From Macrostomum lignano (lineage: Eukaryota), in NCBI GenBank assembly GCA_002269645.1, contig NIVC01001263.1, positions 62,001-126,000 on the forward strand: 64,000 bases of DNA. The letters run 5' to 3'. The position numbers were made by a program, and so were the translations under genes. The number at the start of each line of letters is the position of its first letter. The first letter of the stretch is position 1. Of this stretch, positions 2,637 to 39,756 are shown piece by piece. The notes below the pieces were generated by a model that was given only the letters and a program-made list of their open reading frames with translations, was not told the DNA's origin and did no database searches.

Positions 2637-3347
2637 TATGTACCCATTTGAACTGCAGATTTCTAAGAAAATAATTATAAAAATAAAAATGTGCAAAAGT
2701 AAAGGATCACAACACTAGTGTCTTTTAATTTTGTAAATGAGATGTATTAAATTAACTAAAACTATTAAACAAATAACTTCAAAAATCTAACTAAATTCCC
2801 TAGTATTAGCAATGAGATATATGATTTTTGAATATGTAAGTATATATTGTTAGAATAGACATTAAATACTTGGTTTAATATACAATCTTGTGAAAATGTT
2901 AGTATACTAGAAATAAAAAATCTTTTTGACTAATATAAATCAAACAACATTTTTTCTTTGAAATTAAGTCATTTATATAATACTAGAAACTCAAAACTGC
3001 TACCAGTCAATACATTGATTTATACATGTAATAAAACTAAGAGTTCTGATAACTTATGTACCCAATTTAGGCTCTGCTGTTAATTCAATGGTAATTATAT
3101 AAACTAGCCTAGTTATTTCAAGTGTGCACTAACTAAATGGCATTTTCAATTCCCACCAAAACTTTTAGATCAGAGGCGTGAAAAAGTGCACTATGATAAA
3201 ATTACTGCACGCATTCAGAGCCTCTGCAGCGGCTTGAATGAAGACTATGTTGAGCCAGTAAGTGCCTTCACATTGCCTACTAGTTAGTAGCCAGTAGCAT
3301 GTATGTAATTCAGCACTTGTATCTTGGCTCTGCCTTTCAATGCGCAG

Positions 3348-6300: not shown

Positions 6301-7109
6301 TGCGCAATAGCCTCCTGCTGGCCCCGATGCCTACCGCCTCCACAGCTCAAATTCTCGGCAACAATGAGAGCATTGAGGCCTACACTAGCAATGTGTACAG
6401 CAGGCGGGTTCTGTCCGGCGAATTCCAGGTGGTTAATCCGCATCTGCTGCGCGACCTCACCAGGCTGGGTCTCTGGTCAGACGATCTGAAGACTGCAATC
6501 GTGGCTAACCAGGTGAGTCGTATGCATCAATAATTAGCTATTTAGAGACATCCTGGTTGGCGCATTGGCCTTTGAGCGGCCATTCTGAAATTCGACTCTG
6601 AAAAGGACAATTAGATACGAAGTATTATATGTTCTATGCACATGTTCTATCCCAGCTGACCCATTGTCACTCCGCAGGGCTCCGTCCAGAGCATCGATGG
6701 CATACCGCAGGAGGTGAAGGACCTGTACAAGACGGTGTGGGAGATCCCGCAGAAGCGCATCATGGAAATGGCCGCCGACCGCGGCGCCTACATTGACCAG
6801 AGCCAGAGCCTGAACCTGCACATCGCCCAGCCCAACTTTGCCAAGATCACCAGCATGCACTTCTTCGCCTGGCGCAGCGGCCTGAAGACCGGCATGTACT
6901 ACCTGCGCACCAGGCCGGCCGCCCAGCCAATCCAGTTCACCGTGGACAAGGCCAGGGTTCGGGTCAAGGGCAAGGAGAACGACGCCTCCGAACCGGCTGG
7001 CGACACCAAGCAGGCGGAGGCCGCTATGCAGGAGCTCCGCCTGCAGAACCAGAAGGACATGCTCTGCTCGCTGGAGAACAAGGAGGCCTGTCTGAGCTGC
7101 CAGGGCTGA
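3348..7109 (+). CDS. RRM1: Ribonucleoside-diphosphate reductase large subunit (class Ia R1), 5'-partial
   Basis: Exons 3348-4090, 4704-5210, 5870-6512 and 6678-7109 (GT-AG, phases consistent, 774 aa). Motifs: LSSCFLL, SNLCTEI (catalytic N-C-E), [22 protein letters not shown] and C-terminal CLSC. About 36 N-terminal ATP-cone residues are missing, so exon 1 should lie upstream of the window. Confidence 0.97.
4168..4661. repeat. Intronic minisatellite, ~30-bp units (partly a 61-bp dimer)
   Basis: GGGATCCTCAGAGACGAGATAGTGTGTGCA and related units inside an RRM1 intron. Confidence 0.9.
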
Positions 7110-7885
7110 GCCAGCTATTGAGTGCTGTTTTTCAGCTTTAAACTACTTTAAGTAGCTACCAAACTGTGTTTTTATCTCAATTTTTTCTACTAAAGTCCCA
7201 ATATTTTTATAAAACTTTTTAAACACTTTCCATATTTGATCAGCTATTTAATGCGAGGCATTTCATACCTGCTTTGAGTACTGCTTGTCTATTTTCTACA
7301 GTTCAGTGACGTTCGGTGCTAATTTTACAAGCTAACAGGCAGCGTTTTGCATGGCGCAATTCCTACCCTAATAAGTAAAAATGATTACTCACTGCACTGT
7401 TTTGTGTTTGTCCGCATTTTATTACAATCGTACTCTGAAGCTTGTCTCTAAGTCTCAATAATGCTTTTAATCTGAACTCCCGAAATGTTTTTATTGTTAC
7501 ACCAATTTTTGTCCTTTATTTTATAGTCCCAACAGTTTTCTTTTGTTACAATAATCAATCTGTGGTGCGAAATTCGTAATGTTTATATATTTATAGTGCA
7601 CAATTTGTAAGCCACTTTTATTATCATCCTGCCCTTAATTAAACTGATTTAAATATTACAGTGCACCGAGTCGGTCCGGCCGCTGCCCCAATATAATTTA
7701 ATCCTATGCCAACTCTCTTTATTCGAAAAAATTGATTTATTAGACTTCTTAAATCTCATTTTACTTACGAGTAAACCACTGAACCACATTAGACTTGATA
7801 AATGCGTCACAGTGACCACAGAGCGGCAGTTGTGTGTACGAGCGTAGATAAAGGAGAGGATTGCTTCTTAACCTTGAAAGCATCA

Positions 7886-9772: not shown

Positions 9773-17959
<8,187 letters not shown>

Positions 17960-18202
17960 CCCCTCAGGGCTGACAGACTCCAGCTCATTCTCCCATGAAC
18001 ACTGCGCTCATATTTATCCTGATATTCCGCTTTCATCTGTAGCAGAGGGCTGTGTGATCCTCGGGCACTCAAATTGACCAAGAGCAAATAAATCCTCCGA
18101 CCTGCTCTTACCCGAAAATTGCGATTTGCGGCTGTTGTCTGCGTCTTAAATTGATTTAAAATGGCGTTTTAGCCTGACTAAGTCCCTTGCGAATAATCAG
18201 TA

Positions 18203-19395
18203 CCTGCCAGTTGTCTGTCAGTGAGTGATGAGGTGACTGCCAGTTGTCTGTCAGTGAGTGATGAGGTGACTGCCAGTTGTCTGTCAGTGAGTGATGGGTG
18301 ACTGCCAGTTGTCTGTCAGTGAGTGATGGGTGACTGCCAGTTGTCTGTCAGTGAGTGATGAGGTGACTGCCAGTTGTCTGTCAGTGAGTGATGAGGTGAC
18401 TGCCAGTTGTCTGTCAGTGAGTGATGAGGTGACTGCCAGTTGTCTGTCAGTGAGTGATGAGGTGACTGCCAGTTGTCTGTCAGTGAGTGATGAGGTGACT
18501 GCCAGTTGTCTGTCAGTGAGTGATGAGGTGACTGCCAGTTGTCTGTCAGTGAGTGATGAGTGACTGCCAGTTGTCTGTCAGTGAGTGATGAGGTGACTGC
18601 CAGTTGTCTGTCAGTGAGTGATGGGTGACTGCCAGTTGTCTGTCAGTGAGTGATGAGGTGACTGCCAGTTGTCTGTCAGTGAGTGATGAGGTGACTGCCA
18701 ATTGTCTGTCAGTGAGTGATGAGGTGACTGCCAGTTGTCTGTCAGTGAGTGATGAGGTGACTGCCAGTTGTCTGTCAGTGAGTGATGAGGTGACTGCCAG
18801 TTGTCTGTCAGTGAGTGATGAGGTGACTGCCAGTTGTCTGTCAGTGAGTGATGAGTGACTGCCAGTTGTCTGTCAGTGAGTGATGAGGTGACTGCCAGTT
18901 GTCTGTCAGTGAGTGATGAGTGACTGCCAGTTGTCTGTCAGTGAGTGATGAGGTGACTGCCAGTTGTCTGTCAGTGAGTGATGAGGCTGCCAGTTGTCTG
19001 TCAGTGAGTGATGAGGTGACTGCCAGTTGTCTGTCAGTGAGTGATGGGTGACTGCCAGTTGTCTGTCAGTGAGTGATGAGGCTGCCAGTTGTCTGTCAGT
19101 GAGTGATGAGGTGACTGCCAGTTGTCTGTCAGTGAGTGATGGGTGACTGCCAGTTGTCTGTCAGTGAGTGATGAGGCTGCCAGTTGTCTGTCAGTGAGTG
19201 ATGAGGTGACTGCCAGTTGTCTGTCAGTGAGTGATGAGGTGACTGCCAGTTGTCTGTCAGTGAGTGATGGGTGACTGCCAGTTGTCAATCAATTAGTGAT
19301 GAGGTGACTGCCAGTTGTCTGTCAGTGAGTGACGAGGTGACTGCCAGTTGTCTGTCAGTGAGTGACGAGGTGACTGTCAGTTGTCAATTAGTGAT
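18203..19395. repeat. 33-bp minisatellite filling the GRAMD4-receptor intergenic space
   Basis: (GTGACTGCCAGTTGTCTGTCAGTGAGTGATGAG)n, about 35 copies. Confidence 0.97.
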
Positions 19396-19474
19396 GAGTT
19401 GCCTGTTTGCCTTCGCACTAGCAGCCGATGAAGCTCATCTGGCCAAGAATCGCCGGTACCTGCTGAGCCGTGCG

Positions 19475-19577
19475 CTGATTGGCTGGGTGCGGGTGACCAG
19501 TTCTTTCTCGACCCTCATCTGAGCCGCACTGGCTGGAGACAGACGGCAGGGGTGCGGTGACTTTGCGTATAATTTAA
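19475..19577 (+). promoter_or_regulatory. Possible proximal promoter of the PstS-receptor gene
   Basis: Reverse CCAAT box CTGATTGGCT at 19475-19484 and TATA-like TATAATTTAA at 19568-19577, about 120 nt before the ATG at 19698. Motif evidence only. Confidence 0.35.
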
Positions 19578-19697: not shown

Positions 19698-22600
19698 ATG
19701 ACAGGCGCTGTGCTGTTGAACATGGTTGGCATGGTAACCGTGATAGCCGCCGGCTCGGCCGAAGCCATCACTGTGCGCGGCAGCGGGGCGACCTTCCCGC
19801 AGAATGTATACATTGCCGTCTGCGACCGCTACAGTGCGCACCGCAGCGCCTGGGCGGACGTCAGCATCGTCTACTCGGGCGTGGGCAGCGGCACCGGCCG
19901 GCTCAATTTCCAGCGGGGCTACAACAACCAGGCCGACCCCGACTACCAGCTGTTTGCCGGCAGCGACTCCATCATGAAGGACTCGGAGTACAGCAGCTAC
20001 CCGGAGAGCCAGATGTTCCCCACGCTGGCGGGGTGAGCTGCTGGCGGGATCTCCACCTTGTCTCTGCGACTCTGCGAGGGATTGCTAGTTTAGCCTACAA
20101 GCACTGGAGTAGAATGGATTGCTAGTCTAGCCTACATGCACTGGAGTAGAATGGATTGCTAGTCTAGCCTAAATGCACTGGAGTAGAATGGATTGCTAGT
20201 CTAGCCTACATGCACTGGAGTAGAATGGATTGCTAGTCTAGCCTACATGCACTGGAGTAGAATGGATTGCTAGTCTAGCCTACATGCACTGGAGTAGAAT
20301 GGATTGCTAGTCTAGCCTACAAGCACTGGAGTAGAATGGATTGCTAGTCTAGCCTACATGCACTGGAGTAGAATGGATTGCTAGTCTAGCCTAAATGCAC
20401 TGGAGTAGAATGGATTGCTAGTCTAGCCTACATGCACTGGAGTAGAATGGATTGCTAGTCTAGCCTACATGCACTGGAGTAGAATGGATTGCTAGTCTAG
20501 CCTACATGCACTGGAGTAGAATGGATTGCTAGTCTAGCCTACATGCACTGGAGTAGAATGGATTGCTAGTCTAGCCTAAATGCACTGGAGTAGAATGGAT
20601 TGCTAGTCTAGCCTAAATGCACTGGAGTAGAATGGATTGCTAGTCTAGCCTAAATGCACTGTAGTAGAATGGATTGCTAGTCTAGCCTACATGCACTGGA
20701 GTAGAATGGATTGCTAGTCTAGCCTACATGCACTGGAGTAGAATGGATTGCTAGTCTGAGCATTTTGTTGTTGTTAGTCTACAGATCTAACCCATCTATC
20801 GCATAGATTCATTGGAATCTGTGACAAGTTTTTATCTGCAGATATTGTTGAAGATTTCCTTTCTGTCAGTTCTATCCTGCTGCAGGCTCGCGAGTCAGTG
20901 TTTGGTCGGATTGTATAAAAAGTATACAAAACAAACTCATTGTGCCGGTGCAGCCCGTCAGAGCAAGCAATCCACTTTGACTTTTGTGCTGTGGCTGCAA
21001 AAACAAAAGTGGCAGGTCTAAGACCCAAAGCAGGCAAAAGTGCTGCTTTCATGCCGGGATCTGGAAGTAGCAGCGCGGGATTTTAGGCTGCTTTTTAGCT
21101 CGTAAAAGCAACATTGAAGAATGAGAAGGGAGAGGCGGGCTGCTCCATCTCAACCTGAAAACAGGCCACAAGCCATGTTGTTTTTTCTTGAGCATACTTT
21201 TCCGCGGCTGAGCTCTCGGCTCTGCTAGCTTGAGGTGGCGCCTGTCTCTTTTTAGTTCCGTTTGTAGTTGTATTTCAGAAAATTGGATTTGATCCAGAAA
21301 AAGGACTCGTCTCTGGTGGTCCTGAGGCTGGAAATTAATATCTATATAGCGACAGAAAAACGATGAAGGGTGGAGAATATGATTGATAAAGAAAGCAGGA
21401 ACTGGTGACTTTTAGGTCAGATGTGGGTGGGTAGGTAGGTAGGTAGTTAGGTAGGTACGTGGGTAAGTGGATAGGTAGATAGGTGGGTAGGTGCGTGAAT
21501 TGGTGGGTAGGCAGTTAGGTGGGTAGATTGGTGGGTAGGTACTTGGTAGGTTGATCGGTAGGTAGATAGGTAGGTAGGTAGGTAGGTAGGTAGGTAGGTA
21601 GGTAGGTAGGTAGGTAGGTAGGTAGGTAGGTAGGTAGGCACGTAAATAGGTGGGTAGGTAGATGGGTGGGTAGGTGGGTAGGTAGGTTGGTAGGTGGGTA
21701 GGTAGTTAGGTAGGTGGGTAGGTAGTTAGGTAGGTAGGTGGGTAGGTAGTTAGGTAGGTAGGTGGGTAGGTAGGTGGGTAGGCAGGTGGGTAGGTAGTTA
21801 GGTAGGTAGTTAGGTAGGTAGGTGGGTAGGTAGGTGGGTAGGTAGGTGGGTAGGTAGTTAGGTAGGTAGGTGGGTAGGTAGTTAGGTAGGTAGTTAGGTA
21901 GGCAGGTGGGTAGGCAGGTGGGTAGGCAGGTGGGTAGGCAGGTGGGTAGGCAGGTGGGTAGGCAGGTGAATAGGTGGGTAGGCAGGTGGGTAGGCAGGTG
22001 GGTAGGCAGGTGGGTAGGCAGGTGGGTAGGCAGGTGGGTAGGCAGGTGGGTAGGCAGGTGGGTAGGCAGGTGGGTAGGCAGGTGGGTAGGCAGGTGGGTA
22101 GGCAGGTGGGTAGGCAGGTAGGCATACAGGCAGTTCAGTAATTGAATAGCCAGGCAAAGCAAGCCAGTTGGACTCGAGAACTCCAACAAAGATGAAAGCC
22201 CTCAGCTCATCAAACAGCTCGCATCGCTCACTCTAATTCAGAGTTAAGACTAGGAAAGATTTGTCACCCGACTGGCTCACAATGATTTCCAGCTTGGCAG
22301 AATCGCGAATCAGACTTTGACAGAAAGCAGAGCTGACTTTTTAACTCTTAGCGAAACAGGAAACTTGTGTATGTCGAGATCCGCCCATGCAGCAGTTCCC
22401 CACGTCAGCGGCAGCTCTGAGGACTCTGTTAATTGAAACTTAGCCGCTGATCCGCTGCTACAAAAAGTTTGTTTTTTTCCAGCCCACCTTGCTGAGTCTT
22501 TTTTTCTCCACTTCATTGTTTTGCCCTCCGCTCCGCCGCCATGGGGCTGCTGGCTCATGACGGCGCCTCCCGCCCTCCGCTCCGCCGCCATGGGGCTGCT

Positions 22601-25600
22601 GGCTCATGACGGCGCCTCCCGCCCTCCGCTCCGCCGCCATGGGGCTGCTGGCTCATGACGGCGCCTCCCGTCCTCCGCTCCGCCGCCATGGGGCTGCTGG
22701 CTCATGACGGCGCCTCCCGCCCTCCGCTCCGCCGCCATGGGGCTGCTGGCTCATGACGGCGCCTCCCGTCCTCCGCTCCGCCGCCATGGGGCTGCTGGCT
22801 CATGACGGCGCCTCCCGCCCTCCGCTCCGCCGCCATGGGGCTGCTGGCTCATGACGGCGCCTCCCGCCCTCCGCTCCGCCGCCATGGGGCTGCTGGCTCA
22901 TGACGGCGCATCCCGTCCTCCGCTCCGCCGCCATGGGGCTGCTGGCTCATGACGGCGCCTCCCGCCCTCCGCTCCGCCGCCATGGGGCTGCTGGCTCATG
23001 ACGGCGCCTCCCGTCCTCCGCTCCGCCGCCATGGGGCTGCTGGCTCATGACGGCGCCTCCCGCCCTCCGCTCCGCCCCCAGCTTTGGCACCGTAAGCTCT
23101 GTTCAAATAGCCAATTGAGCTGAAACCCTGAGCCGCTATTAGGCTGGGCCGTATGCCTGAGCTCTGGCCTGATGGCCACCCTCTGCCGCGCCAGTCTCTG
23201 CAACAACTCATTAATTAATGGGCCGTGAAGGGTTTAATTCCGCCAGCAGTAACCGGCCTGCCCTCGCCTCACAGTAGCCTCACAATAAAAATTGCCATCC
23301 AGCATCGGCAGGACAAGTGTAGAGACCAGCGATCGCCGCTATTTAAAGTACGAGACCAGTCAGAGCGATAGCCTGCCTTAGTGTAGAAGATCCATGCTAA
23401 TATTTACAGATGCATGAATTGCTCAGATATGTCTTTTGCGAGTGTGTGCTTTCATTGTGTACTTTGGCTGAATTATGCACGAGTTTACAGTTTGCTGAGA
23501 TCTCAGCTTATCCGTGCCTACAGACTCTCGAGAAACTCCCGTGACTACTGCAATGCACGGGACTGGTTGCAAGGACCGACCGCTAGGTCTGCTTTTGCAT
23601 TCACAAGCCGCTCTGGAGACAGACATGGCGTGATGCAGGCATGGCGTGATACAGACATGGCGTGATACAGGCATGGCGTGATGCAGGCATGGCGTGATGC
23701 AGGCATGGTGTGATGCAGGCATGGTGTGATACAGATATGGTGTGACACAGATATGGTGTGATTCAGGCTTGAGTAGCCCTGGAGTGTGTCAGGGGGCTTG
23801 AGTAGCCCTGGAGCGTGTCAGGGGGGGCTTGAGTAGCCCTGGAGTGTGTCAGGGGGGCTTGAGTAGCCCTGGAGCGTGTCAGGGGGCTTGAATAGTACTG
23901 GAGTGTGTCGGGGGACTCTGGGGGAGTGAGGCTTACTCGAACATAGCCAGTTGAGAGGCCTCGAGGTGCTGAGAAGCTAAATGAAAGCCAACGAACTCCC
24001 ACAGCGCCGTGGCGGTGGCCTATCACCCGCCGTCCTTCGGTGCAACACGGCTGCGCCTGACCCGCCAGACTCTGGTCGACATCTACATGGGGAAAACTTC
24101 GCACTGGGACAGCCCGGGCATTGTTAACGCGAACCCGAACTCGAGTCTGCCCCACAACCCCATCCGGCCCATGGCTCGCATGGACAAGTCGGGCTCCACC
24201 GCAGTCTTCACCCAAGCTCTGAGCTCCTTCTCAGCCGAGTGGAAGGCCAAGTACGGCGAGTTCGAGCGCGAGCTCAACAAAGTCACCTGGAGACACCCGG
24301 ACTGGAACAATTCAGTTGTTGAGTTCTTCGCCCAGGGTACCGATGGGCTCACCGCCCTACTCAGCAGCCTGCGAAACTCCATCGCCTACATATCGGCCTC
24401 GGATCTCAGACTGAACGATGAGAGCCTCGTGAGCCTCGCGCTGATTGAGAACGCCAACGGAAGCTTCGTGGACGCCTCGCAACCGGCCTCCGTGCAGGCG
24501 GCCATGGACTTCTACGCTAACACAATGGACTCCCGGCTAACTGGACACCTCATTGACGCCCAGAACCCGGACGCCTACCCAATCGCCACCTACACCTACT
24601 TCATCATCAAGATGAACATGACTGCGAAGTGAGTCTTATGGGACGGTTTCTCTTGTTTTATATAAACACTATTGTTTCCTGCAGCCTAAGTTTGTTTGTC
24701 GATTAGAGCTAAAGGCAGCAAAGCTTAAAGAGGATCTGGGTTCACACAGCTACAGGGGTTTTTCCTAGAAAATACTAGCAGGAAGTCTGTTTCCTAGATA
24801 ACAGCAAGGACTATTGTACATGTAACGAGTAGAATAAGGACGATTGTACATGTAACGAGTAGAATAAGGACGATTGTACATGTAACGAGTAGAATAAGGA
24901 CGATTGTACATGTAACGAGTAGAATAAGGACGATTGTACATGTAACGAGTAGAATAAGGACTATTGTACATGTAACGAGTAGAATAAGGACTATTGTACA
25001 TGTAACGAGTAGAATAAGGACGATTGTACATGTAACGAGTAGAACAAGGACGATTGTACAGGCAATGAGTAGAATAAGGACTATTGTACAGTCAATGAGT
25101 AGAACAAGGACTACTGGACCGGCAATGAGAGTAGAACAAGGACTACTGGACCGGCAATGAGAGTAGAACAAGGACTACTGGACCGGCAATGAGAGTAGAA
25201 CAAGGACTACTGGACCAGCAATGAGAGTAGAACAAGGACTACTGGACCGGCAATGAGAGTAGAACAAGGACTACTGGACCGGCAATGAGAGTAGAACAAG
25301 GACTACTGGACCGGCAATGAGAGTAGAACAAGGACTACTGGACCGGCAATGAGAGTAGAACAAGGACTACTGGACCGGCAATGAGAGTAGAACAAGGACT
25401 ACTGGACCGGCAATGAGAGTAGAATCATTGAGAAGTCTCATTCAGCCCCAGAGGATAAGCAGACGCAATGGGGATCGTATGTGAACTGAAGCCTCTTTAT
25501 TGGACATGATGCTGTGTGCTTATGAAGGCCAGTCCCTCTCAATCGTTGCATATCCACTGTGGGGTTATGTAGCTGTCGACGGCTGCAGCATTTGCACGGG

Positions 25601-28600
25601 GCGATAACCTCTTAAAACTGAACCTTAAAACTGACTAACCAAACAGACCTCACTCAGCAGCCCTTTGTGCGAGTGAGGTCTGATAACAATGGAACAGCAG
25701 TCTCTGCTGATTCTTTCATTCTAATGTCGTGGATTGGTTTTATTGGACAGCCCGACGCTTAATTTTCATAATTGCTGTGCTTCCAGGCTAAAAGCAATAA
25801 AAGATGCACAAATTATTTAAATTGATTGCAGGCCAAGGCTTTTCATGTTTCGCATATAGAAAGGACACAAGAGCGACATGCGTGTAGATGGGGCAAAGAG
25901 AGGACTGTAGAGTGGACAAGAAAGGACTGTAGAGTGGACAAGAGAGGACTGTCGAGTGGACAAGAGAGGACTGTAGAGTGGACAAGAGAGGACTGTCGAG
26001 AGGACAAGAGAGGACTGTCGAGAGGACAAGAGAGGACTGTAGAGTGGACAAGAGAGGACTGTCTTGAGGACAAGAGAGGACTGTAGAGAGGACAAGAGAG
26101 GACTGTAGACTGGACAAGAGAGGACTGTAGAGTGGACAAGAGAGGACTGTCGAGAGGACAAGAGAGGACTGTAGAGTGGACAAGAGAGGACTGTCGAGAG
26201 GACAAGAGAGGACTGTAGAGTGGACAATAGAGGACTGTCGAGAGGACAAGAAAGGACTGTAGAGTGGACAATAGAGGACTGTCGAGAGGACAAGAAAGGA
26301 CTGTAGAGTGGACAATAGAGGACTGTCGAGAGGACAAGAAAGGACTGTAGAGTGGACAAGAGAGGACTGTAGAGTGGACAAGAGAGGACTGTAGAGTGGA
26401 CTGTAGAGTGGACAAGAGAGGACTGTAGAGTGGACTGTAGAGTGGACAAGAGAGGACTGTAGAGTGGACAAGAGAGAACTATAGAGTGGACTGTAGAGTA
26501 GACAAGAGAGGACTGTAGAGTAGACAAGAGGGGACTGTAGAGTGGACAAGAGAGGACTGGTTAATGTTAGAGGGCTATAAAACAAAAATTCAGACGGCCG
26601 AAAGGTACTAAATAGATAGGGCACTCAGCACTAGCCAGACTCCGCCCGAACTCCAGGTGCGATGAAGCCACCGAGTTCTATGGCTTCCTGAACTGGTTCT
26701 ACACGGACCCGGAGCCGGCCAGCATTATCCGCGCCAACAATTTCGTGCCGCTCAGCAACGCTGTCCGCCAGAAGGTCCGGACGCAGGTGCTCGACAAGGC
26801 CGCTTGCGGTGGGCGGCTCCTGCGCGAGCTCTGGCTGGAGAAGCGGCGCCGCGAGCAGACGGAAGCGGAGAGCCGGAACTCGTCCTGGATGGCGCCGACG
26901 CTCGCCTCCGTTGGCGTCGGGCTGCTGGTGGCCGGCGGCCTCGGGGCGTACATTGCCAGGCAGAGCTACGTGCAGTGGAAGCTGCTCAACCAGGTGAGCC
27001 AATTCTGAAGCTTCAGCAACACACTGTATTTTTACATTCTTATTCCTCAGGTTGTAGAGAAAGCCTCCGGATCCTTGAATTTTTCGTGCCTGCTCGTGTG
27101 CCGCGTCTCCATCCAGGTTTTCTTGACTGGCACTGAGAGTTCATCCGTCAGTCTTTAGACAAGCCTTCAGGCAGCAAAGCAGCTCACAGCTCAACACCAA
27201 GGGAGCAGGAGAGACCAAGGAGATTTGGGCTGGGCTCTTTACGCAGAGTGAAAGTAGTTTGGATAACATATGAGCCGCTGGTTAGGTGGGGCACGCCACA
27301 AAGGCAGTTGATACTTACTTCTGCATCAAAAAGTCGCGCAGGTGCCAGACAGCAACTCTCCCCCTCCTCAAAACTTGGCCCGCGCAGGACCTGTGGCTGG
27401 TGCCGATCGAGGAGATCATGTTCTTCGCTCCGCGCAGCCGCGGCCGCAACCGATCAATGCGCAGCTTCCGCATGGACGATTCCGACACGATCTCCGTCGG
27501 CACGCAGATGACGGAGGATGAAGCGGAGAGCGAGGAGGATTACGACGCGGACACGGTGCTGCAGTGGCCGGGCAAGTTCCGGGAGGCCAGCGTCGGCGTG
27601 CGACTGCTGCAGACGCAGCGATCGCAAGAGAGGCTCGACATCTCCACTAAGAAGCTGCTGCAGTGGATGATGGACCGCGTCCACCACAACAACGTGGCAG
27701 CGTTCCACGGCCTGACCCAGGTCGAGCGGGACTTCTTTGTTGTGTCAGAGTACTGCGAGCGCGGCCCGCTCAGCAAGGTTGTGCACAACCCCAAGCTGGA
27801 CCTGGCGCCCGCGGTCAAAGGCTCCATAGTGATGGACATCTGCCAGGCTGTCAGCTACCTGCACAGCCAGGGCATCGTGCACGGCATGCTGCGGACCAGC
27901 GCCTGCCTCATGGACAGCAAGTGGACGGTGAAGCTAGCGGACTGGGAGTACCTCATGTACTATTCAACCACCACCCGGGCCGTCAAAGACGCCCGGCCGG
28001 CCATCCAGTACGTCCGCGACGCCATACTGGGCGAGTATCCCAGCGAGCAGCAGGTCCTGGACTTCGACATCTACGTTGCACCCGAGATCCTCCGCTCCGA
28101 GCTGCAGTGGCCGCCGGACCAGAGCTCCGACATTTACTCCTGCGCTGTGATCTTCTACGAGATCTTCACCCGGAGCATTCCCTTCGCCAGCTACAGGGAG
28201 GACCTGAGCAACGCCCGGGACCTGCTCACGGCCATTGTGAAGAACTCGCTGCGGCCTGACCAGCTTCAGGACATCCCCATCACCTTCCGCCAGGTGCTGG
28301 AAACCTCCTGGAGCGACGATCCCAGGGTCCGGCCCAGCGCCGAGAACCTCACCAAGCTGGTCAAGAAGTGCTTCCCCAGGCGCAAGAACATGATGCAGAG
28401 CATGTTTGACAGCCTGGAGTCCGAGCACCTGCTGCTGGAGAATGAGATGCTGGCATTAAACTCGGCCATGGAGGAGCAGCGAGACTCCTACCAGGCCATG
28501 ATCCGCTCCAACCTGCCCGAGTTCTACGCCAGCCGATTGCTCAACGACCAGCCGTTCCAGCCAGAGTACAAGCGGCTGGCTGGGGTGCTCTTCGTGCGCC

Positions 28601-31295
28601 TGGATGGCCTGGCCTGCCTCAGCGACGTCAACCGGCCCTTTGAGGTGAACGCCGTCTCCAACGCCCACTACCACGTATTCAACAGCATCGCCGCCAGCTA
28701 CAGGGACGTCCACATGCGCCACGCGTTCGGCGACCTCTTCCTGTTCCTATGCGGCCTGCGGCGAAAGTCCTCTCGACGCAGCGTCCGCGATCTGCTGCGC
28801 CTGGCTGAGCACCTAATCCGCCTAGTGCGATGCGGCGGAGTCCATGTCAATGACGACGCCGACTGCGGCAATGGCGGCGGTGTAGCGTCACCGCCGATGG
28901 CCGCCTGCGCAGGGCTGCACTGCGGCCCAGTGTCCATCGGCGTCATCACTTCCGGCGTCCCGGCGCTCTTCGCTGGCGGCGGCGCGCTCCATGTGGCCCT
29001 GCAGCTGGCGCTGAGCGCCGAGAAGCACCAGGTGCACGCGTCCGAGACGGTGCGGCGGGCCCTCGCGGGCGAAACTGAGGAGAACGAAGAGCCGGAGACT
29101 GCAGCGCCATCAGAGCCAGAGCAGCCAACCGACGAGGCTGCGAAGTTGGAGGCGGCGATGGAGGCAGCTGAGGGGGCGGCGCAGGAAATGGGCAACGGAG
29201 CCGACGGGGAAGCCGCCGAGAGTGCCACGGCGGATCAGGCAGAAGCTCAGCCCCCGATTCCACAGCCGGAGCCAAAGTCCGCCACCGCAGCGGCGAAGGT
29301 GGCGGCGGCAGCGGCGGCAACCGCTGCGGCGGCTGCGAATGCGGCAGCCACGGCGGCGGCAACGGCGGCAGCGGCAGCTTCGGGCACCTCGCCACCGCCG
29401 GGCTTGGAGGCGGCCGGCGAAAAACGCAGCGACAGGAAGAAAAAGAAAAAGAAAAAGGAGCAGCAAAAGTTCCACTTTGAGAAGCGACTCTGCCCGGCTT
29501 CGGTGAGTGCAAATTCGAGGTCGCTGAGGCATTGGTGGCCGGTGCTGACACCTGCTATGTTTCTAATGTGGCTTGAAGCAGCAGGCATCCGCCTGAGTTT
29601 TTATTAATAGCTCTACCGAGTCCACTTCAAAGCCAGCTCCCCCCATCAATCAGGATAATGACGGAACTGTCTTCAGAGCAAAATGCTCAACTTCCAAAGA
29701 GCAGAATTGTTCTACCCAGTGATTAATTAGGCTTGCAGAATGCGCAATTGACGGTTGGGCAGGTGAGGCCAGCTCAGAGTTGCACCTGTGAGTAGGCTGG
29801 TAATTTCCCTACTTTACTTGGGTAAATCCTATTTAGGGAAAAGATGGTCATCTTTAATATTGTCGAAAATTTCTGAGCAATGCTTCCAGTAAGACTATAA
29901 TCAGAGGGCTACCTTATCCTTCAAATAAGCATCTATCGATTTCAGAATCCCTCAATGCTCCCAGGCGGGCTCGCCTTTTGTTTCACTGCACTGCGGCCCG
30001 TCCCCAGCCCTCACTTGAGTTGGTGGCGGGCGCTGCGGTGTCAATATTTGAGTCCGGCAGGCCCGGCAGCAGCTCCTGATCGATTGCCGGAGCAGAATGG
30101 CGGGAGGGGCGGCCGGCTGTAATCGAATTTCACGTCAGCGAGTCTCAGAGATATGTAATTAGACCTGCAAATTAATTTGGGGTAATTTTGGCCCCGACAG
30201 ATGCAGCACAGGCTGGGGTTGGCATGGCTGGCCAGACTCCGGACCATAAAATTCAGTCCCTAGTGGGGCGCCCACTCCATTATGAAAAAAATGCGCATGG
30301 CAGTGCGATGGGCAGGGAGAGAGAGAGAGAGAGAGAAAGAGGGGGAGAGAGAGAGGACTTTTATCCGAACAATGGCGTGGTGGAGAAGCTGGGCTTAGCG
30401 AGGCGAATTCCAGAAACGTGAAATTCGCGAGAAAAAGTCGGATTCGCAATCGTCATCAATTAAGAAAAGATTAGATAAGAAGACAGACAACAAGAATTAT
30501 AAAACAGGTGGCAAATGGCGTGACGTCACAGTGGGGACACCGCAGGCTCACCGAGCTGCCCCCCCTCCCCACCCACAGGACGGCAAATTTGTTACCACCT
30601 ACTGCATCTCGAGCGTCAGCGATGAGGCTGAGGATTCCATGCTCCTGGAGGCTGGGGACGCGCTGATCCCGTCTGACGTCGAAGCGGATGGCGACGCGGA
30701 TGCCGACGCGGATGCGGACGCGGGCTCCGACGAGGAGGCGAACCCGTCCTGGGGGGCGCAGCGCCTCCGCGGCACGGCCCGCTCGCCGCCGCCCGCCCCC
30801 GCCCTGGGCAGCCGCCGCTATCGCCTGCACGCCGCTGCCAGAGACTCCGACGAATCGGCGGCGGCGGCGGCGGCGGCCTCGCCAGATCGCGTCACTGTCA
30901 CAGTCGTCGACGAGGTCCGGCCGCCGACGCCGCCGCTGCCATCAACGCGGCCGGCCGCCACGGAGGCGCAGAAGCTGCTGCCGCGCAGCCTGCAGAAAGC
31001 GCGGCTGACCGGCAGCGGCTCCGAGGCGGCGCCGTTTCGCATCTTTATGTCCAGCGAGTCTCTGGAGATGTCGGCGCTGGGACCGGCGCAGCGCAGCAAC
31101 GGCACCGCGGCGCGGAAGTCGATCCTCAGCCGCAGCGCCGGCACCAACGGGTCCGCCAACGCCAAGAAGAAGGTGCTGTCATTCTGCGACGATACGGCGA
31201 TCGCCGTGGTCATCGAGGAGGGCGCGACGAATCGAGCATTTATTGAGGACTCGGTGGAGGACGATGCCGAGGGCAGCCTCGTCTGCGAGCTCTGA
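19698..31295 (+). CDS. Single-pass receptor: signal peptide, PstS-type phosphate-binding domain, TM helix, kinase-homology domain, degenerate guanylate cyclase domain (receptor-GC-like, ~1375 aa)
   Basis: Exons 19698-20032, 24005-24628, 26657-26993, 27388-29502 and 30579-31295 (GT-AG, in phase, 4128 nt). Ectodomain motifs [46 protein letters not shown] and [12 protein letters not shown] align with E. coli PstS. TM is [27 protein letters not shown] motifs are [21 protein letters not shown] and YVAPE. Cyclase-like motifs are [31 protein letters not shown] and QVHASE. AATAAA at 31477. Confidence 0.9.
20082..20757. repeat. 37-bp minisatellite in receptor intron 1
   Basis: (GCTAGTCTAGCCTACATGCACTGGAGTAGAATGGATT)n, about 18 copies. 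Confidence 0.95.
21420..22125. repeat. G-rich (GGTA)n/(GGTGGGTAGGCA)n satellite in receptor intron 1
   Basis: Direct inspection; source of the PTYL/PAYP pseudo-ORFs. Confidence 0.95.
22525..23080. repeat. 49-bp GC/CpG-rich minisatellite in receptor intron 1
   Basis: (CCGCCATGGGGCTGCTGGCTCATGACGGCGCCTCCCGCCCTCCGCTCCG)n, about 11 copies. Confidence 0.95.
23620..23912. repeat. Two adjacent short arrays (16-bp and ~28-30-bp units)
   Basis: GCATGGCGTGATGCAG units followed by GGGGCTTGAGTAGCCCTGGAGTGTGTCA units. Confidence 0.85.
24800..25425. repeat. 30-bp array grading into a 32-bp variant (receptor intron 2)
   Basis: AGGACGATTGTACATGTAACGAGTAGAATA units change to AGGACTACTGGACCGGCAATGAGAGTAGAACA units. 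Confidence 0.9.
25880..26560. repeat. 22-bp minisatellite (receptor intron 2)
   Basis: (GAGAGGACTGTAGAGTGGACAA)n. Confidence 0.92.
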
Positions 31296-31606
31296 GGCGC
31301 GTCGGCACCGCCAAGGCCGCCTCTCTAATGCTATTTCTGTAACTTTTGCAATTCATTATATTTTCCTGTACTCAAGACTGCAGACTGGTGGCAGTTCTAC
31401 GCTCGTATTTATTTGCTGACTCAGAACCGCGAACGTAACCTGTTTGCTATTTTACTTTGAAAGTAGAAGTGTTTTTAATAAATATTTTTAATGAGCCTCG
31501 CAACTGGATCCCATTCTAGCGGCAGCTGTCCAACAGGATTCAGCGACTGCTGCCAGTCTTACCCGGTTAAGCCTGAGAAAAATTACAAAATTTATTAGCC
31601 TTTGCC

Positions 31607-31607
<1 letters not shown>

Positions 31608-31645
<38 letters not shown>

Positions 31646-31648
31646 TAG

Positions 31649-31687
<39 letters not shown>

Positions 31688-31688
31688 G

Positions 31689-31743
<55 letters not shown>

Positions 31744-31744
31744 G

Positions 31745-31817
<73 letters not shown>

Positions 31818-31834
31818 TAGTGTGTGTCTGTCTT

Positions 31835-31885
<51 letters not shown>

Positions 31886-31892
31886 TAGTGTG

Positions 31893-31967
<75 letters not shown>

Positions 31968-31970
31968 TTT

Positions 31971-32033
<63 letters not shown>

Positions 32034-32040
32034 ATCTGTC
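31608..32040. repeat. (TCTG)n microsatellite
   Basis: Direct inspection. Confidence 0.97.
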
Positions 32041-32142
32041 TTCATCCGCATACAGAGCGAAGGAAACGCAAATGAGCCAAAGAGGAGGCAGAGACGGAAG
32101 TTTTTCAACTCCCCAGCCTGGGCTAAGCTGCTCCAAGACGCT

Positions 32143-32803
32143 TCAGCCCCCACCTGCTAGCAACTCCGGGGGAGGCTTGAAGACACGCTTGCAGCCCGCC
32201 AGCTTCCTGGGAAGCCTTATGTAGTCGGACTCATTGCAAGCATGAGCCGGGAGCTTTGCAGCCAGCCCGGGTGACTCAACTAAACTGCTTCTTGGCTCAT
32301 ATTTACACTTTATTCGCACTGTTTGCACTGAATCTTTTCGCTAAAAACCGTGCGGCAGTGTTATTTCAGCCGTCAATCTGTTTCTTCTGGCGCTGTCTAT
32401 TTCGGTTTGTCTAATTGAGGTCCGCCTTTCTCGCTTTGCGCCAGAAGCCGCTTGTGCGAGCTGCGATCCGATCTGAGTTGATACTGATTATAGATCAGTT
32501 ATGCGCCTACTGATGAGCTTTAATCAGCTTGGGCAAAGCAAAGGAAACTCTTTAATTAGGTATTTTTCTCTGTACTTTTTCGGGGTTTTTTCGACTTCTG
32601 CTACTAGAAGCAAAGTCGCTCTTCTCTGAAGAAATGCTCTCTCTCTCTCTACCTCTGCTCCAAGCGCTGACTTGGGACGCGGCAGCGGGCGCGGGTTCGG
32701 CGTCGGCATCGCCCGCCGGACAGCAGCCATGCAGCGGGCAGAGCCGGTGATAACCTGTCTCTGACCCCGCCTCTTCCACGTTCGGACTGGCGGCTTCACT
32801 TCG
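32143..32803 (-). other. Possible two terminal exons of an unidentified small gene
   Basis: GC-rich segments 32803-32653 and 32279-32143 have AG/GT boundaries and join in phase to give RSEAASPNVEE...AWSRVESPGLAAKLP...LLAGGG*. No homologue recognised. Confidence 0.25.
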
Positions 32804-32896: not shown

Positions 32897-33331
32897 TGAG
32901 CAAACCAACAGTACTGAGGCTTGCTTCACTGCGGGACCGGCGGCAAACCAACAGTACTGGGGCTTGCTTCACTGCGGGACCGGCGGCAAACCAACTGTAC
33001 TGGGGCTTGCTTCACTGCGGGACCGGCGGCAAACCAACTGTACTGGGGCTTGCTTCACTGCGGGACCGGCGGCAAACCAACTGTACTGGGGCTTGCTTCA
33101 CTGCGGGACCGGCGGCAAACCAACAGTACTGGGGCTTGCTTCACTGCGGGACCGGCGGCAAACCAACAGTACTGGGGCTTGCTTCACTGCGGGACCGGCG
33201 GCAAACCAACTGTACTGGGGCTTGCTTCACTGCGGGACCGGCGGCAAACCAACTGTACTGGGGCTTGCTTCACTGCGGGACCGGCGGCAAACCAACTGTA
33301 CTGGGGCTTGCTTCACTGCGGGACCGGCGGC
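32897..33331. repeat. 43-bp minisatellite, ~10 copies
   Basis: (CAAACCAACTGTACTGGGGCTTGCTTCACTGCGGGACCGGCGG)n. Confidence 0.95.
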
Positions 33332-33669
33332 GCGCAATGAATTCGACCCTCTAAAACAATGATAAAACCCTCTTAGACCAATTTTATTCTTCTCAGCGCT
33401 TGAGTTTATTCCTGCGCTGACATCCTGACTGAGAACTTTCAGGCTAGCAGATCACTGTAGACCAGAGCGCCTCAGGACAAAGGAAACGCAGTAATCATCA
33501 TGCACTCATAAATTTTCGGCTTACAACCAACTGACTGCTTGATACTGATGCCCACCAACAGCTGGACCAGCCACTGCAACCCGAGACTGCGGAGATGATC
33601 AGGGGATCAGGGGGATCTGTCTCGATTTATATAGCAGAAAATTCATATCAAGGAAGCTGTTCTCTTTAT

Positions 33670-36530: not shown

Positions 36531-37657
36531 ATGCAGCATCCCTGCCGACTGCTCATTGCGCTATTCTTGGCCACAGCGGCTCCGCTGATCGCCAAATCCC
36601 AGGAAGACTCGTCCGACGGCATCGGCTGCGGCTACAGCTGGCAGCAGTCGATCTGCAAGCTCGCGCCAGCCGATTTCAGCTTCAATGACGGCTGCAACAC
36701 GGTGACCTGCGACGGTAGCGGCTCGCTGGTCTCCACGCTGATGGCCTGCCCGCCGGCCGCCACAGCCGAGGAGCGACAGCGCTGCCAGACGATCCGTGAG
36801 AACATACAGCTGCGACTGGACGATGCGGACAGGGTAACCTGCCCGGCGCTGTCCATGCAGGCCGTCTGCGCCACCGCCGGTGCCGGCTTCACTTACAGCG
36901 ACGGCTGCAACCCGGTGGTCTGCGACGGCAACGGCAGCGGCACGTCCACGTTGATGTTCTGCCCGTCGCCGGGAGACCCTACCCAGATCGCCAGGTGCGA
37001 GCGGCGCATGGAGCGCCTGGTCGAACGGATGGAGCCGCGGACCTGCTCGGGATCAACAAGACGGAGGTCTGCCGGATGGAGGGCATCGGGTACCGATTCA
37101 GCGACGGCTGCAACACGATCGAGTGCGGAGAGAGCGGCATGTGGACCAGCACGCTCATGGGCTGCCCGCCAGCCAGTTCCGAGAGCGCCCTCTGCCAGTG
37201 GGTGGTCAGCAAAGCCCGCCGAACTGCTCCTGAGGGCAACCGGGACCTCGACTGTCCGGAGCTGGCCATGTCGCGAATCTGCACGAATGAGATGAACGGC
37301 TTTCGCTACAACGACGGATGCAACGAAGTGTACTGCTCCTCGCCGGGCCGTGGTGTCAGCACCACCCGCCTCTGTCGGGTGGGCAGCGAGGCGGAGGCCG
37401 CTCGCAGGTGCAGCGACGCCAAGACGGCCATGGAGGCGAAGCGCCGAGAGTCAAAGCGGCGCACGAGCTGCCTGACGGCTGCGGACGTCTGCAAGCAGCC
37501 CGGGGAGCGGAAATCGTTCTTCGACGGCTGCAACTATTGCTTCTGCATGGGCGTCAATCGGGCAGGCTGCACCCGGCGGGCTTGTCAGCCCTACTTCAGC
37601 ACTGAGGAGGAGTTCAGGGCAGAGTGCGTGCGGCGCAAGGCCGGCATCATCAACTAG
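36531..37657 (+). CDS. Secreted pacifastin-like Cys-rich repeat protein A (5 repeats, ~375 aa), interrupted by a 1-nt frameshift at about 37049-37051
   Basis: Signal peptide MQHPCRLLIALFLATAAPLIAKS. Four (F/Y)x(F/Y)xDGCNxVxC...STxxxC repeats are followed by a canonical pacifastin motif CKQPGERKSFFDGCNYCFCMGVNRAGCTRRAC. The track splits it into ORFs 36531-37295 and 36995-37657. Intronless. Confidence 0.75.
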
Positions 37658-38787: not shown

Positions 38788-39756
38788 ATGCAGCTTCTCT
38801 TCCTCATCACGGTGGGCCTGCTGTGCACTGCCGTTTCGAGTAGTCAGGCCGAGAAGGATGAGCCGGCCCTGCGCTGTCCGGACCTCGATCCCGGACTCGT
38901 CTGCAACGCCACGGAGTCCGGCTTCAGCTACAACGATGGCTGCAACACCGTCACCTGCAACGATGGCGGTCTGGCGAGCACCACCCTCCTGGCCTGCCCG
39001 GAGCCCAGCAGCCGGGGCGAGCGGAACCTCTGCGAGAGCCTCTCCCGCGCCGTCTGGAGCCGCCTCGGCCCCTTCACTTGCTACAACATCGATGCCGACT
39101 CCGTCTGTACCCGCCGCGGCGCCGGCTTCGCCTTCAGCGACGGCTGCAACCGGGTCCGCTGTCTGGCGGCCGGCGGCCACGCCAGGACCCGCATGGAATG
39201 CCCGGTGACCGACCCGACCGGCCCGTACTGCCGCTTCGTGGCATTGGCGTTGGAGTCGGAGGGCTCGGAAAAGCAGCAGTCGGAGGAGCCGCGAGCCGGC
39301 GCGCTCGAGGAGGACGAGTTCGAGTGCCCGGCGCTGCGGCACAGCCGCATCTGCGAGGAGTTCCTGCCGGGCTTCCAGTACAACGACGGCTGTCGGAACG
39401 TCACCTGCGTGTCGGACGGCCTGGCCCGCGTGGCCGACAGCCGCGAGTGCCCGCAGCCGGAGCCCGACAACGAGGCCGCCGCTCTCTACTGCCGGGAGGC
39501 GCAGCGCCGCTTCCAGGAGAAGAAGGACCGGTCGCGCTTCTACACGACCTGCCTGGACGCCGACAGCCTGTGCAGGGGCCGGCGCACCGCCGAACTGGCC
39601 TTCTTCGACGGCTGCAACCGCTGCTTCTGCCTGCCGGACCGCAGCGCCGCCTGCACCCGGGCTGCCTGCCCGCCGATGTTCATCACCCCGGAGGAGTTCA
39701 CCGCCCACTGCCGCCGCGTCGGAGCGGGCGTGCTGTCGCACAGACGGCGGAAGTAG
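38788..39756 (+). CDS. Secreted pacifastin-like Cys-rich repeat protein B (4 repeats, 322 aa)
   Basis: Intact intronless ORF with signal peptide MQLLFLITVGLLCTAVSSSQA, three degenerate repeats and a terminal canonical motif CRGRRTAELAFFDGCNRCFCLPDRSAACTRAAC. AATAAA at 39927. Paralogue of protein A. Confidence 0.85.
   Translation: MQLLFLITVGLLCTAVSSSQAEKDEPALRCPDLDPGLVCNATESGFSYNDGCNTVTCNDGGLASTTLLACPEPSSRGERNLCESLSRAVWSRLGPFTCYNIDADSVCTRRGAGFAFSDGCNRVRCLAAGGHARTRMECPVTDPTGPYCRFVALALESEGSEKQQSEEPRAGALEEDEFECPALRHSRICEEFLPGFQYNDGCRNVTCVSDGLARVADSRECPQPEPDNEAAALYCREAQRRFQEKKDRSRFYTTCLDADSLCRGRRTAELAFFDGCNRCFCLPDRSAACTRAACPPMFITPEEFTAHCRRVGAGVLSHRRRK

Follow-up and report, generated by a model that had tools for sequence, protein, structure and literature searches.

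We analyzed a 64,000-nucleotide stretch of the Macrostomum lignano genome (assembly GCA_002269645.1, contig NIVC01001263.1, positions 62,001 to 126,000; hereafter the window) that carries a gene for a receptor with a PstS-type ectodomain, a kinase-homology domain and a cyclase domain. The gene consists of five exons on the forward strand (19698-31295), was read as intact, and encodes a product of 1375 aa. Both intracellular domains were found to lack catalytic residues, as had been claimed in the original prediction, which was made from the letters of the DNA. The feature described there, 27388-30620, opens at the first base of exon 4, and its final positions (30611-30620) are the end of the last cyclase strand in exon 5.

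The model was obtained by reading the exon-intron junctions. All four introns were canonical GT-AG introns with donors of the form GTGAG[C/T]. The five exons are as follows (a slash marks the junction).

19698-20032, forward strand: exon 1, with the start codon, the signal peptide (aa 1-23) and the PstS N-lobe; open reading frame (ORF), donor GG/GTGAGC
24005-24628, forward strand: exon 2, central PstS; acceptor CACAG/C, donor AA/GTGAGT; the model matches at 100% by tblastn
26657-26993, forward strand: exon 3, end of PstS, stalk and a single transmembrane helix (26892-26957); splice sites
27388-29502, forward strand: exon 4, juxtamembrane region, kinase-homology domain, signalling helix and most of the cyclase; acceptor CAG/GAC, donor TCG/GTGAGT
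30579-31295, forward strand: exon 5, last cyclase strand, tail and stop codon (31293-31295); acceptor CACAG/GAC

The domains of the product were thus ordered as signal peptide, PstS/PBP_like_2 ectodomain, one transmembrane helix, juxtamembrane region, kinase-homology domain, signalling helix, cyclase and tail, which is the order of a receptor guanylyl cyclase with its single transmembrane helix and C-terminal class III cyclase domain. The junctions between exons 2, 3 and 4 were supported by a 353-aa M. lignano fragment in UniRef (P0001; A0A1I8GI19-type, named 'PBP_domain domain-containing protein'), which matched the locus at 99-100% and spanned these junctions at 99% identity. In a tblastn search, the receptor gene was single-copy within the 64-kb window. 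A model in which exon 4 ran on to the stop at 29607, giving 1171 aa, was rejected, because the donor at 29503 and exon 5 complete the cyclase fold.

Two intron positions were compared with the coordinates of the orthologue in the abalone Haliotis cracherodii. In both genes the Gly codon after FPTLA is interrupted by the first intron, in phase 2, and the last intron of the flatworm gene, in phase 0 just before the final cyclase strand, has its Haliotis equivalent within one codon. A single giant exon (aa 109-971) of the abalone genes (loci L003 and L004) covers most of PstS together with the transmembrane helix, the kinase-homology domain and the core of the cyclase. In the flatworm gene, the part for PstS and the transmembrane helix is interrupted by two further introns, while the positions of the first and last introns are common to both.

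With the Pfam family PBP_like_2 (PF12849) the ectodomain scored 77.1 bits (cut-off 27, E 2.4e-21), and the match covered positions 3-266 of the 267 in the profile. PstS structures in PDB were matched with E values down to 1.9e-26. The Pfam scan of this region returned PBP_like_2 only, with no match to ANF_receptor, the ectodomain type of receptor cyclases such as GC-A and GC-C. The nearest PstS relatives outside animals were bacterial, from Chloroflexota/Anaerolineales, at 33-36% identity. We take the phosphate-ligating residues of E. coli PstS (1IXH) to be T10, F11, S38, D56, R135, S139, G140 and T141. In the HMMER alignment to 1IXH all eight phosphate-binding positions were kept in the flatworm protein, seven of them unchanged and T141 as Ser. 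They lie in the following segments.

19779-19799, forward strand: GSGATFP, phosphate-ligand segment in exon 1; alignment to 1IXH
19878-19898, forward strand: GVGSGTG, phosphate-ligand segment in exon 1; alignment to 1IXH
19953-19967, forward strand: FAGSD, phosphate-ligand segment in exon 1; alignment to 1IXH
24177-24200, forward strand: RMDKSGST, phosphate-binding loop in exon 2; equivalents of R135, D137, S139 and G140 kept, T141 changed to Ser (alignment to 1IXH)

Catalytic positions of the cyclase and kinase-homology domains

The active site of class III cyclases spans the dimer. One protomer gives the two metal-binding Asp residues, and the other gives the base-specifying residues together with Asn and Arg, as seen in the structures of adenylyl cyclase and soluble guanylyl cyclase (sGC). 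The cyclase region of the flatworm gene was divided as follows (AF2, AlphaFold2).

28513-29070, forward strand: cyclase core with degenerate catalytic positions; Pfam, HMMER alignment to GC-A, AF2, Foldseek
29071-29463, forward strand: low-complexity insert of ~130 aa (aa 994-1124), between the last helix and the last two strands
29464-29502, forward strand: penultimate cyclase strand, end of exon 4; aligns to GYITAKRGQIHIK and FQYEVRGETFLK of canonical cyclases; strand in AF2
29503-30578, forward strand: intron before the last cyclase strand; splice signals, homology
30579-30620, forward strand: last cyclase strand, start of exon 5; equivalent to KGKG..TYWL; family alignment, AF2
30621-31295, forward strand: C-terminal tail of ~225 aa; open frame 30399-31292

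Columns of the cyclase domain were assigned by HMMER alignment to human GC-A (PDB 9bcv) and by MAFFT alignment with 19 family members, and the two alignments agreed. FSDIVGF was replaced by FVRLDGL, with R836 (28597-28599) in the place of metal Asp1. KVETIGD was replaced by MRHAFGD, in which the Glu is H877 (28720-28722) and Asp2 is retained as D881 (28732-28734). PRYCLFGD was replaced by PALFAGGG (within 28963-28983), with A958 for Arg and F960 for Cys, and NTASR by HVALQ (within 28990-29004), with H967 for Asn and Q971 for Arg. The manual alignment of the original prediction (FVRLDGL, MRHAFGD, ALFAGGG and H..Q) was thereby reproduced.

Seven catalytic sites (Asp1, Glu, Asp2, Arg of PRYC, Cys, Asn and Arg) were then read from 70 cyclase domains aligned to a profile of canonical domains. 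The flatworm protein read RHDAFHQ at these sites, against DEDRCNR in every canonical member of the alignment. The vertebrate GC-C-like proteins that were retrieved also read DEDRCNR, except for one with DDDRCNR. Six of the seven positions were therefore lost, and the second metal Asp, D881, was the only survivor, just as the manual reading had it. None of the residue sets of an active class III cyclase was complete, neither the two metal Asp, nor the guanine-specifying Glu and Cys, nor the transition-state Asn and Arg with the PRYC Arg.

With one of seven positions kept, the protein has no complete half-site to offer as a complementary heterodimer subunit. Since neither half-site is intact, it should be unable to donate a working half-site or to make cyclic GMP (cGMP) as a homodimer, and we infer from these residues that it synthesizes no cGMP, whether alone or as the donor of a complementing half-site. 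A role as a co-catalytic partner, in the manner of the sGC or ODR-1/DAF-11 subunits, requires one intact half-site and was not supported, because only Asp2 is kept.

The fold of the domain, in contrast to its catalytic positions, was that of a class III cyclase, by both the profile match and the beta-alpha-beta-beta-alpha-beta topology. The match to Guanylate_cyc (PF00211) was weak, though above threshold (26.5 bits, the cut-off being 21.9; E 5.7e-6). In the AF2 model, made with the family alignment as input, the predicted local distance difference test score (pLDDT) exceeded 90 in the signalling helix and the core of the cyclase and was ~85 in the two final strands. Foldseek searches of PDB gave the catalytic domains of soluble and receptor guanylyl cyclases as first matches (E 6e-15 for sGC), and the superposition on the GC-A cyclase domain gave a TM score of 0.77 and a root-mean-square deviation of 2.4 A. 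The fold was complete although interrupted by the insert and the intron, and the last strands aligned to F.....RG...KGKG...TYWL of working cyclases. The insert is acidic, then poly-Ala/Thr, then KKKKKKKK. It was a gap in all 19 other aligned relatives and was modeled by AF2 with low to medium confidence. In the tail after the cyclase domain we found no Pfam domain and no recognizable domain or conserved motif, and the MAFFT family alignment showed no conservation of it across the clade. Further splicing may occur within the tail region.

The first part of exon 4 encodes the kinase-homology domain and the signalling helix.

27388-28383, forward strand: juxtamembrane region and kinase-homology domain (pseudokinase), first part of exon 4; Pfam PK_Tyr_Ser-Thr, E 1.3e-25; alignments to RIPK1, GC-A and GC-C
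27559-27579, forward strand: LQWPGKF (aa 490-496), kinase-homology motif
27592-27603, forward strand: VGVR (aa 501-504), kinase-homology motif
27880-27888, forward strand: HGM, kinase-homology motif
27940-27948, forward strand: DWE, kinase-homology motif
28384-28512, forward strand: signalling helix, the coiled-coil linker between the kinase-homology and cyclase domains; AF2 helix over residues 2-43, pLDDT >90

The Pfam kinase match begins at profile position 28 of 258, which means that there is no Gly loop. Alignments to RIPK1 and GC-C placed HGM at the position of HRD/HKD and DWE at that of DFG/DLG, so that the DFG Asp is kept. Among the Gly loop, the beta3 Lys, the HRD Asp and the DFG Asp of an active protein kinase, the set was thus incomplete. 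The earlier description of this domain stood for the missing Gly loop, HGM and DWE, confirmed by the profile and by the RIPK1 and GC-C alignments. VGVR lies at the expected place of the beta3 VAxK, but its placement is by eye only, since the local alignments to kinases and GC-C begin downstream of it. Loss of the HRD Asp is the norm for receptor cyclases, because GC-C itself reads HGH at this position, in line with the earlier remark that kinase-homology domains are normally pseudokinases. The signalling helix aligned by MAFFT to the conserved KSVLDSMME..LEE..EE segment of the family.

The PstS receptor family and selection on the dead cyclase

An exhaustive HMMER search of 1.84 billion representative proteins found 183 matches at E below 1e-30, of which 150 were listed. 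Full-length alignments, at 28-33% identity, were obtained for many of the 183. All three domains (PstS, kinase-homology and cyclase) were present in 56 proteins among the matches listed (the 150 plus their cluster mates). Named members came from the molluscs Haliotis, Argopecten, Mercenaria, Bulinus and Lymnaea, the nemertean Tubulanus, the annelid Owenia, the priapulid Priapulus, the tardigrade Paramacrobiotus and the nematode Trichinella, so that at least five protostome phyla are represented in the family. Automatic annotation has given these proteins names such as 'retinal guanylyl cyclase 2-like' and 'atrial natriuretic peptide receptor 2-like'. Word-indexed homology searches, by comparison, returned the M. 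lignano fragment P0001 as the only eukaryotic relative, and otherwise distant GC-C and bacterial PstS. When such a search was made with a family profile, two Haliotis members were added, and the other matches were again bacterial PstS.

Among the matches listed, ~20 members were canonical at the seven sites (DEDRCNR; for example Owenia, Priapulus and Trichinella) and ~33 were degenerate. The degenerate substitutions were lineage-specific: EQDNCNT in Tubulanus, DNDKVDS in Haliotis, DPCTVDA in Argopecten and KNGLTEK in Mercenaria. Only scaffold positions (H.G....G, P, G, L, S) were conserved in the degenerate cyclase domains, and the catalytic sites had no new consensus. This suggests that selection at the catalytic sites has relaxed, and speaks against a new active site common to these members.

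The position of the flatworm protein was analyzed over the region from PstS to the kinase-homology domain, with the cyclase excluded. In a neighbor-joining tree from BLOSUM distances, it fell inside a clade of degenerate members only. In neighbor-joining bootstraps with Poisson distances, however, a canonical-free grouping was recovered in only ~32% of replicates; the placement is unstable because the flatworm branch is long. In view of the weak bootstraps, we used classification by profile score, with a leave-one-out control, and a motif test. For the same region, we made separate profiles of the canonical members and of two degenerate groups, clade A and clade B. The flatworm protein scored 612.7 bits with clade A, 545.9 with clade B and 540.9 with the canonical profile, and in the control 33 of 35 members were assigned correctly. 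At its start, the kinase-homology domain of the flatworm protein carries LQWPGKF, a form of the motif QWPGK[WFY]. Among the matches listed, 13 of the 33 degenerate members and none of the 20 canonical ones had this motif. Both the motif and the better clade A score assign it to clade A, as that clade is defined within the present analysis. The gene structure agrees with this placement in the intron positions common to Haliotis. On these sequence characters, the flatworm protein classifies with the degenerate QWPGK clade of an old protostome family of PstS receptor cyclases.

Several other matches had unusual compositions. A 199-aa M. lignano protein (P0206; UniRef A0A1I8FU75) that appeared as a 69%-identical paralogue was rejected as such. 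It is a frame-shifted model of this locus, or of one nearly identical to it, in which three reading frames of window positions 26666-27700 are pieced together, and it probably comes from an indel-rich older assembly. Five long family matches of 1300-2400 aa (P0138, P0211, P0242, P0270 and P0275) had three or four PstS domains in tandem but neither a kinase nor a cyclase domain, and P0215, P0227, P0246 and P0262 had four to six repeated kinase-homology domains. A 791-aa Euglena-like transcript (P0321; eukprot EG_transcript_3874) also carries a PstS domain, so eukaryotic multidomain PstS proteins are not confined to animals. The ENA assembly ERZ25072999 (L002) contains a clade-A-like ORF with PstS and kinase-homology domains (P0141) and, ~2 kb downstream, a separate Guanylate_cyc ORF (6763-7380). 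The two probably belong to one gene, which a prokaryote-style gene call divided at an intron. Another degenerate member, P0143, was found in the same ENA sample as P0141.

Selection was measured between the clade A orthologues of Haliotis cracherodii and H. asinina as the ratio of nonsynonymous to synonymous substitution rates (dN/dS), by the Nei-Gojobori method for each domain, with codons obtained via tblastn. The abalone pair was used in place of a Macrostomum pair, P0001 being without a DNA record. The dS between the orthologues was ~0.5-0.8, and the ratios were as follows.

PstS: dN/dS 0.17
Transmembrane helix and juxtamembrane region: dN/dS 0.08
Kinase-homology domain: dN/dS 0.05
Signalling helix: dN/dS 0.02
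Cyclase: dN/dS 0.18
Tail: dN/dS 0.14

In the abalone orthologues, purifying selection acts on the dead cyclase domain as strongly as on the ligand-binding domain. The concern that the cyclase domain is simply decaying was therefore answered at the level of the clade, although not for the flatworm gene itself. For the flatworm gene, the 773-codon open frame at 27286-29607 (forward strand) would stay open by chance at this base composition with p ~5e-10. Together with the canonical splice sites, the eight phosphate-binding positions kept and the large family, this is evidence that the receptor gene is not decaying.

The window as a whole is eukaryotic, repeat-rich DNA. Long tandem-repeat arrays lie in the introns and flanks of the receptor gene (17000-19500, 21500-23100, 24800-26600, 31500-32200 and 32900-33400), and yield many spurious repetitive ORFs on both strands, such as repeated 48-aa units at 22.4-23.1 kb. 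Upstream, on the forward strand, are exons of a ribonucleotide reductase large subunit (3324-4094 and 5838-6533; Pfam ATP-cone, RNR_lgN and RNR_lgC, E down to 1e-70). Downstream, also on the forward strand, are frames for pacifastin-type protease inhibitors (36531-37295 and 38788-39756; PF05375, E 2.5e-8 and 2.6e-13).

Possible roles of a probably non-catalytic PstS receptor

We hold with moderate confidence that the gene encodes a type I membrane PstS receptor with a pseudokinase and a pseudo-cyclase, most likely a non-catalytic phosphate-sensing subunit that pairs with a competent cyclase. The ectodomain would bind extracellular phosphate or a similar oxyanion and pass the signal on without catalysis, through the signalling helix and the dimer interface of the cyclase fold. 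In the most likely mode, it would pair with a catalytically competent PstS cyclase and spoil or tune both composite sites, in the manner of NPR-C; in an alternative mode, it would act as a homodimeric scaffold signalling through its long C-terminal tail. The conserved signalling helix, fold and phosphate ligands would fit a subunit that still senses its ligand and docks via a cyclase-type interface. Canonical PstS receptor cyclases exist in the family, which makes a partner of the right kind plausible. Pairing with a canonical cyclase would deprive both composite sites of essential residues, and the subunit would therefore be an inhibitor or attenuator rather than a co-catalyst. There is precedent in NPR-C, which heterodimerizes with GC-A and GC-B and thereby prevents formation of a functional cyclase domain (PMC10334801). 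Obligate heterodimers, with a single site assembled from parts of both monomers, are also known among receptor cyclases, as for ODR-1/DAF-11 (PMC5225109).

Several points count against a phosphate-sensing partner subunit in M. lignano. No partner cyclase has been identified in this species, whose genome was not searched, and a canonical and a degenerate member were not found together in any of the ENA samples examined, where only two clade-A-like genes shared a sample. The bootstraps of the degenerate grouping were low, as described above. Purifying selection was measured in abalone rather than in Macrostomum. Phosphate, or a similar oxyanion, is the presumed ligand on account of the conserved ligand residues. 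Loss of activity is likewise read from the residues, and with H967 and Q971 polar, unorthodox chemistry is conceivable. The exon 4-5 splice and the 3' end of the gene model were drawn from homology and splice signals only.

That the protein is instead a non-catalytic receptor standing alone, with no cyclase partner, we regard as rather unlikely. It would then be a homodimeric scaffold, with the pseudokinase or the 225-aa tail recruiting effectors, or a surface phosphate sink or decoy. The age and diversity of the dead clade, the long and variable C-terminal tails of many members and the absence so far of an identified partner (in a genome that was not searched) would all suit such a receptor, as would the conservation of scaffold residues only in the dead cyclase domains, which is expected of a structural dimerization module. 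The tail of the flatworm protein, however, is without a recognizable domain or motif and is not conserved across the clade, and retention of the helix and cyclase fold for >500 million years is easier to explain by continued coupling to cyclase-type machinery.

A complementing subunit of the sGC alpha/beta or ODR-1/DAF-11 type, which would give half of one site to a differently degenerate partner, is very unlikely. Obligate heterodimeric receptor cyclases are known (PMC5225109), and the PstS family is rich in differently degenerate members, but a metal half-site requires both Asp, and the flatworm protein has Arg for Asp1 and also Ala for the Arg of PRYC. In the other half, that of substrate and transition state, the required E, C, N and R are replaced by H, F, H and Q.

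We consider it hardly credible that the gene is an assembly artefact or a pseudogene, whether recently dead or in decay. The barely supra-threshold Pfam score of the cyclase, the 130-aa low-complexity insert inside this domain, the repeat-rich DNA around the gene and the frame-shifted second UniRef model of the locus (A0A1I8FU75) would be expected of such a gene. Against this stand 1375 codons open over five exons with canonical splice sites, a 773-codon frame that chance would keep open at ~5e-10, and an independent protein model that matches at 99%. The phosphate ligands and fold-determining residues are kept, and the degenerate state recurs under purifying selection in orthologous clades of other phyla. 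An unorthodox enzymatic activity, with another nucleotide, metal geometry or reaction, seems just as improbable. In its favor, Asp2 survives, the His and Gln that replace Asn and Arg are polar and an extra Asp stands two residues after the lost Asp1 (FVRLDGL), but the replaced positions have no new consensus in the degenerate clade, which speaks against a new shared active site.

We searched the full-text literature for guanylyl cyclases with a PstS or phosphate-binding domain and found no description of this architecture; the coverage was incomplete, and the result is an absence of evidence only. The family of receptor cyclases with a PstS ectodomain is apparently undescribed, while its member proteins are already public, under generic names that hide the ectodomain and the dead catalytic site. 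The flatworm protein should be filed as a pseudo-cyclase member of the PstS-ectodomain receptor-cyclase family, and not as a guanylyl cyclase. Some members of the family are catalytically intact and others are old pseudo-cyclases maintained by selection, and the family adds a natural example of a pseudoenzyme receptor subunit.

To the best of our knowledge, extracellular phosphate sensing by animal cells is poorly understood, and the family is a testable candidate for a direct phosphate-to-cGMP pathway. Tentatively, and with more doubt than belief, we propose that PstS receptor cyclases, with their bacterial-type phosphate-binding domain, are direct extracellular phosphate sensors of protostomes, in which the dead-cyclase clade would be a dedicated regulatory subunit that itself binds phosphate and sets cGMP gain through inactive or attenuated heterodimers. 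If this is true, the PstS cyclases and the dead clade form an undescribed two-component phosphate-sensing system of animals. RNA interference and transgenesis are established in M. lignano, and the receptor gene is therefore open to study in vivo.

Comparison with known systems

The closest proteins among the matches listed were those of clade A (Tubulanus XP_074655677, Haliotis XP_071091629, Argopecten XP_069113401 and Bulinus KAH9502938), at 30-33% identity end to end. The flatworm protein shares with them QWPGK and a degenerate cyclase, and with Haliotis the intron positions. Each lineage has its own substitutions, however, and the flatworm protein is the most divergent, with the insert and a longer tail. 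The canonical PstS cyclases (Owenia fusiformis A0A8J1UIS0, Priapulus XP_014672517 and Trichinella pseudospiralis KRZ27753), which are automatically annotated as guanylate cyclases, have the same architecture at ~28-30% identity over the whole length. They differ in keeping DEDRCNR and lacking QWPGK, and the flatworm protein scores ~70 bits better to the degenerate clade.

Outside the PstS family, the best full-length matches were to GC-C, and the best match of solved structure by sequence was GC-A (NPR1), whose cyclase domain was also the closest structural superposition. Common to GC-A, GC-C and the flatworm protein are the juxtamembrane region, a kinase-homology domain without the HRD Asp (HGx), the signalling helix and the class III cyclase fold. 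The ectodomains differ, with the type II periplasmic-binding fold of PstS in the flatworm protein and the ANF-receptor fold (type I) in GC-A and GC-C. In addition, the flatworm protein has six of seven catalytic residues replaced, the 130-aa cyclase insert and a long tail.

The subunits of sGC alpha/beta and ODR-1/DAF-11 individually lack catalytic residues, like the flatworm protein, and work only in dimers (PMC5225109). They are complementary, with one intact half-site each, whereas the flatworm protein has neither. Bacterial PstS (1IXH) shares the fold family and the eight phosphate-binding positions, with one conservative Thr-to-Ser change; it serves an ABC transporter, while in the flatworm protein the PstS domain is joined to a transmembrane helix and a signalling module of animal type. 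NPR-C is likewise a non-catalytic member of the receptor-cyclase family, with the same ligand class as the active receptors, and suppresses cGMP by heterodimerizing (PMC10334801). NPR-C has lost the whole kinase-homology and cyclase region, whereas the flatworm protein keeps both domains as folded pseudo-enzymes.

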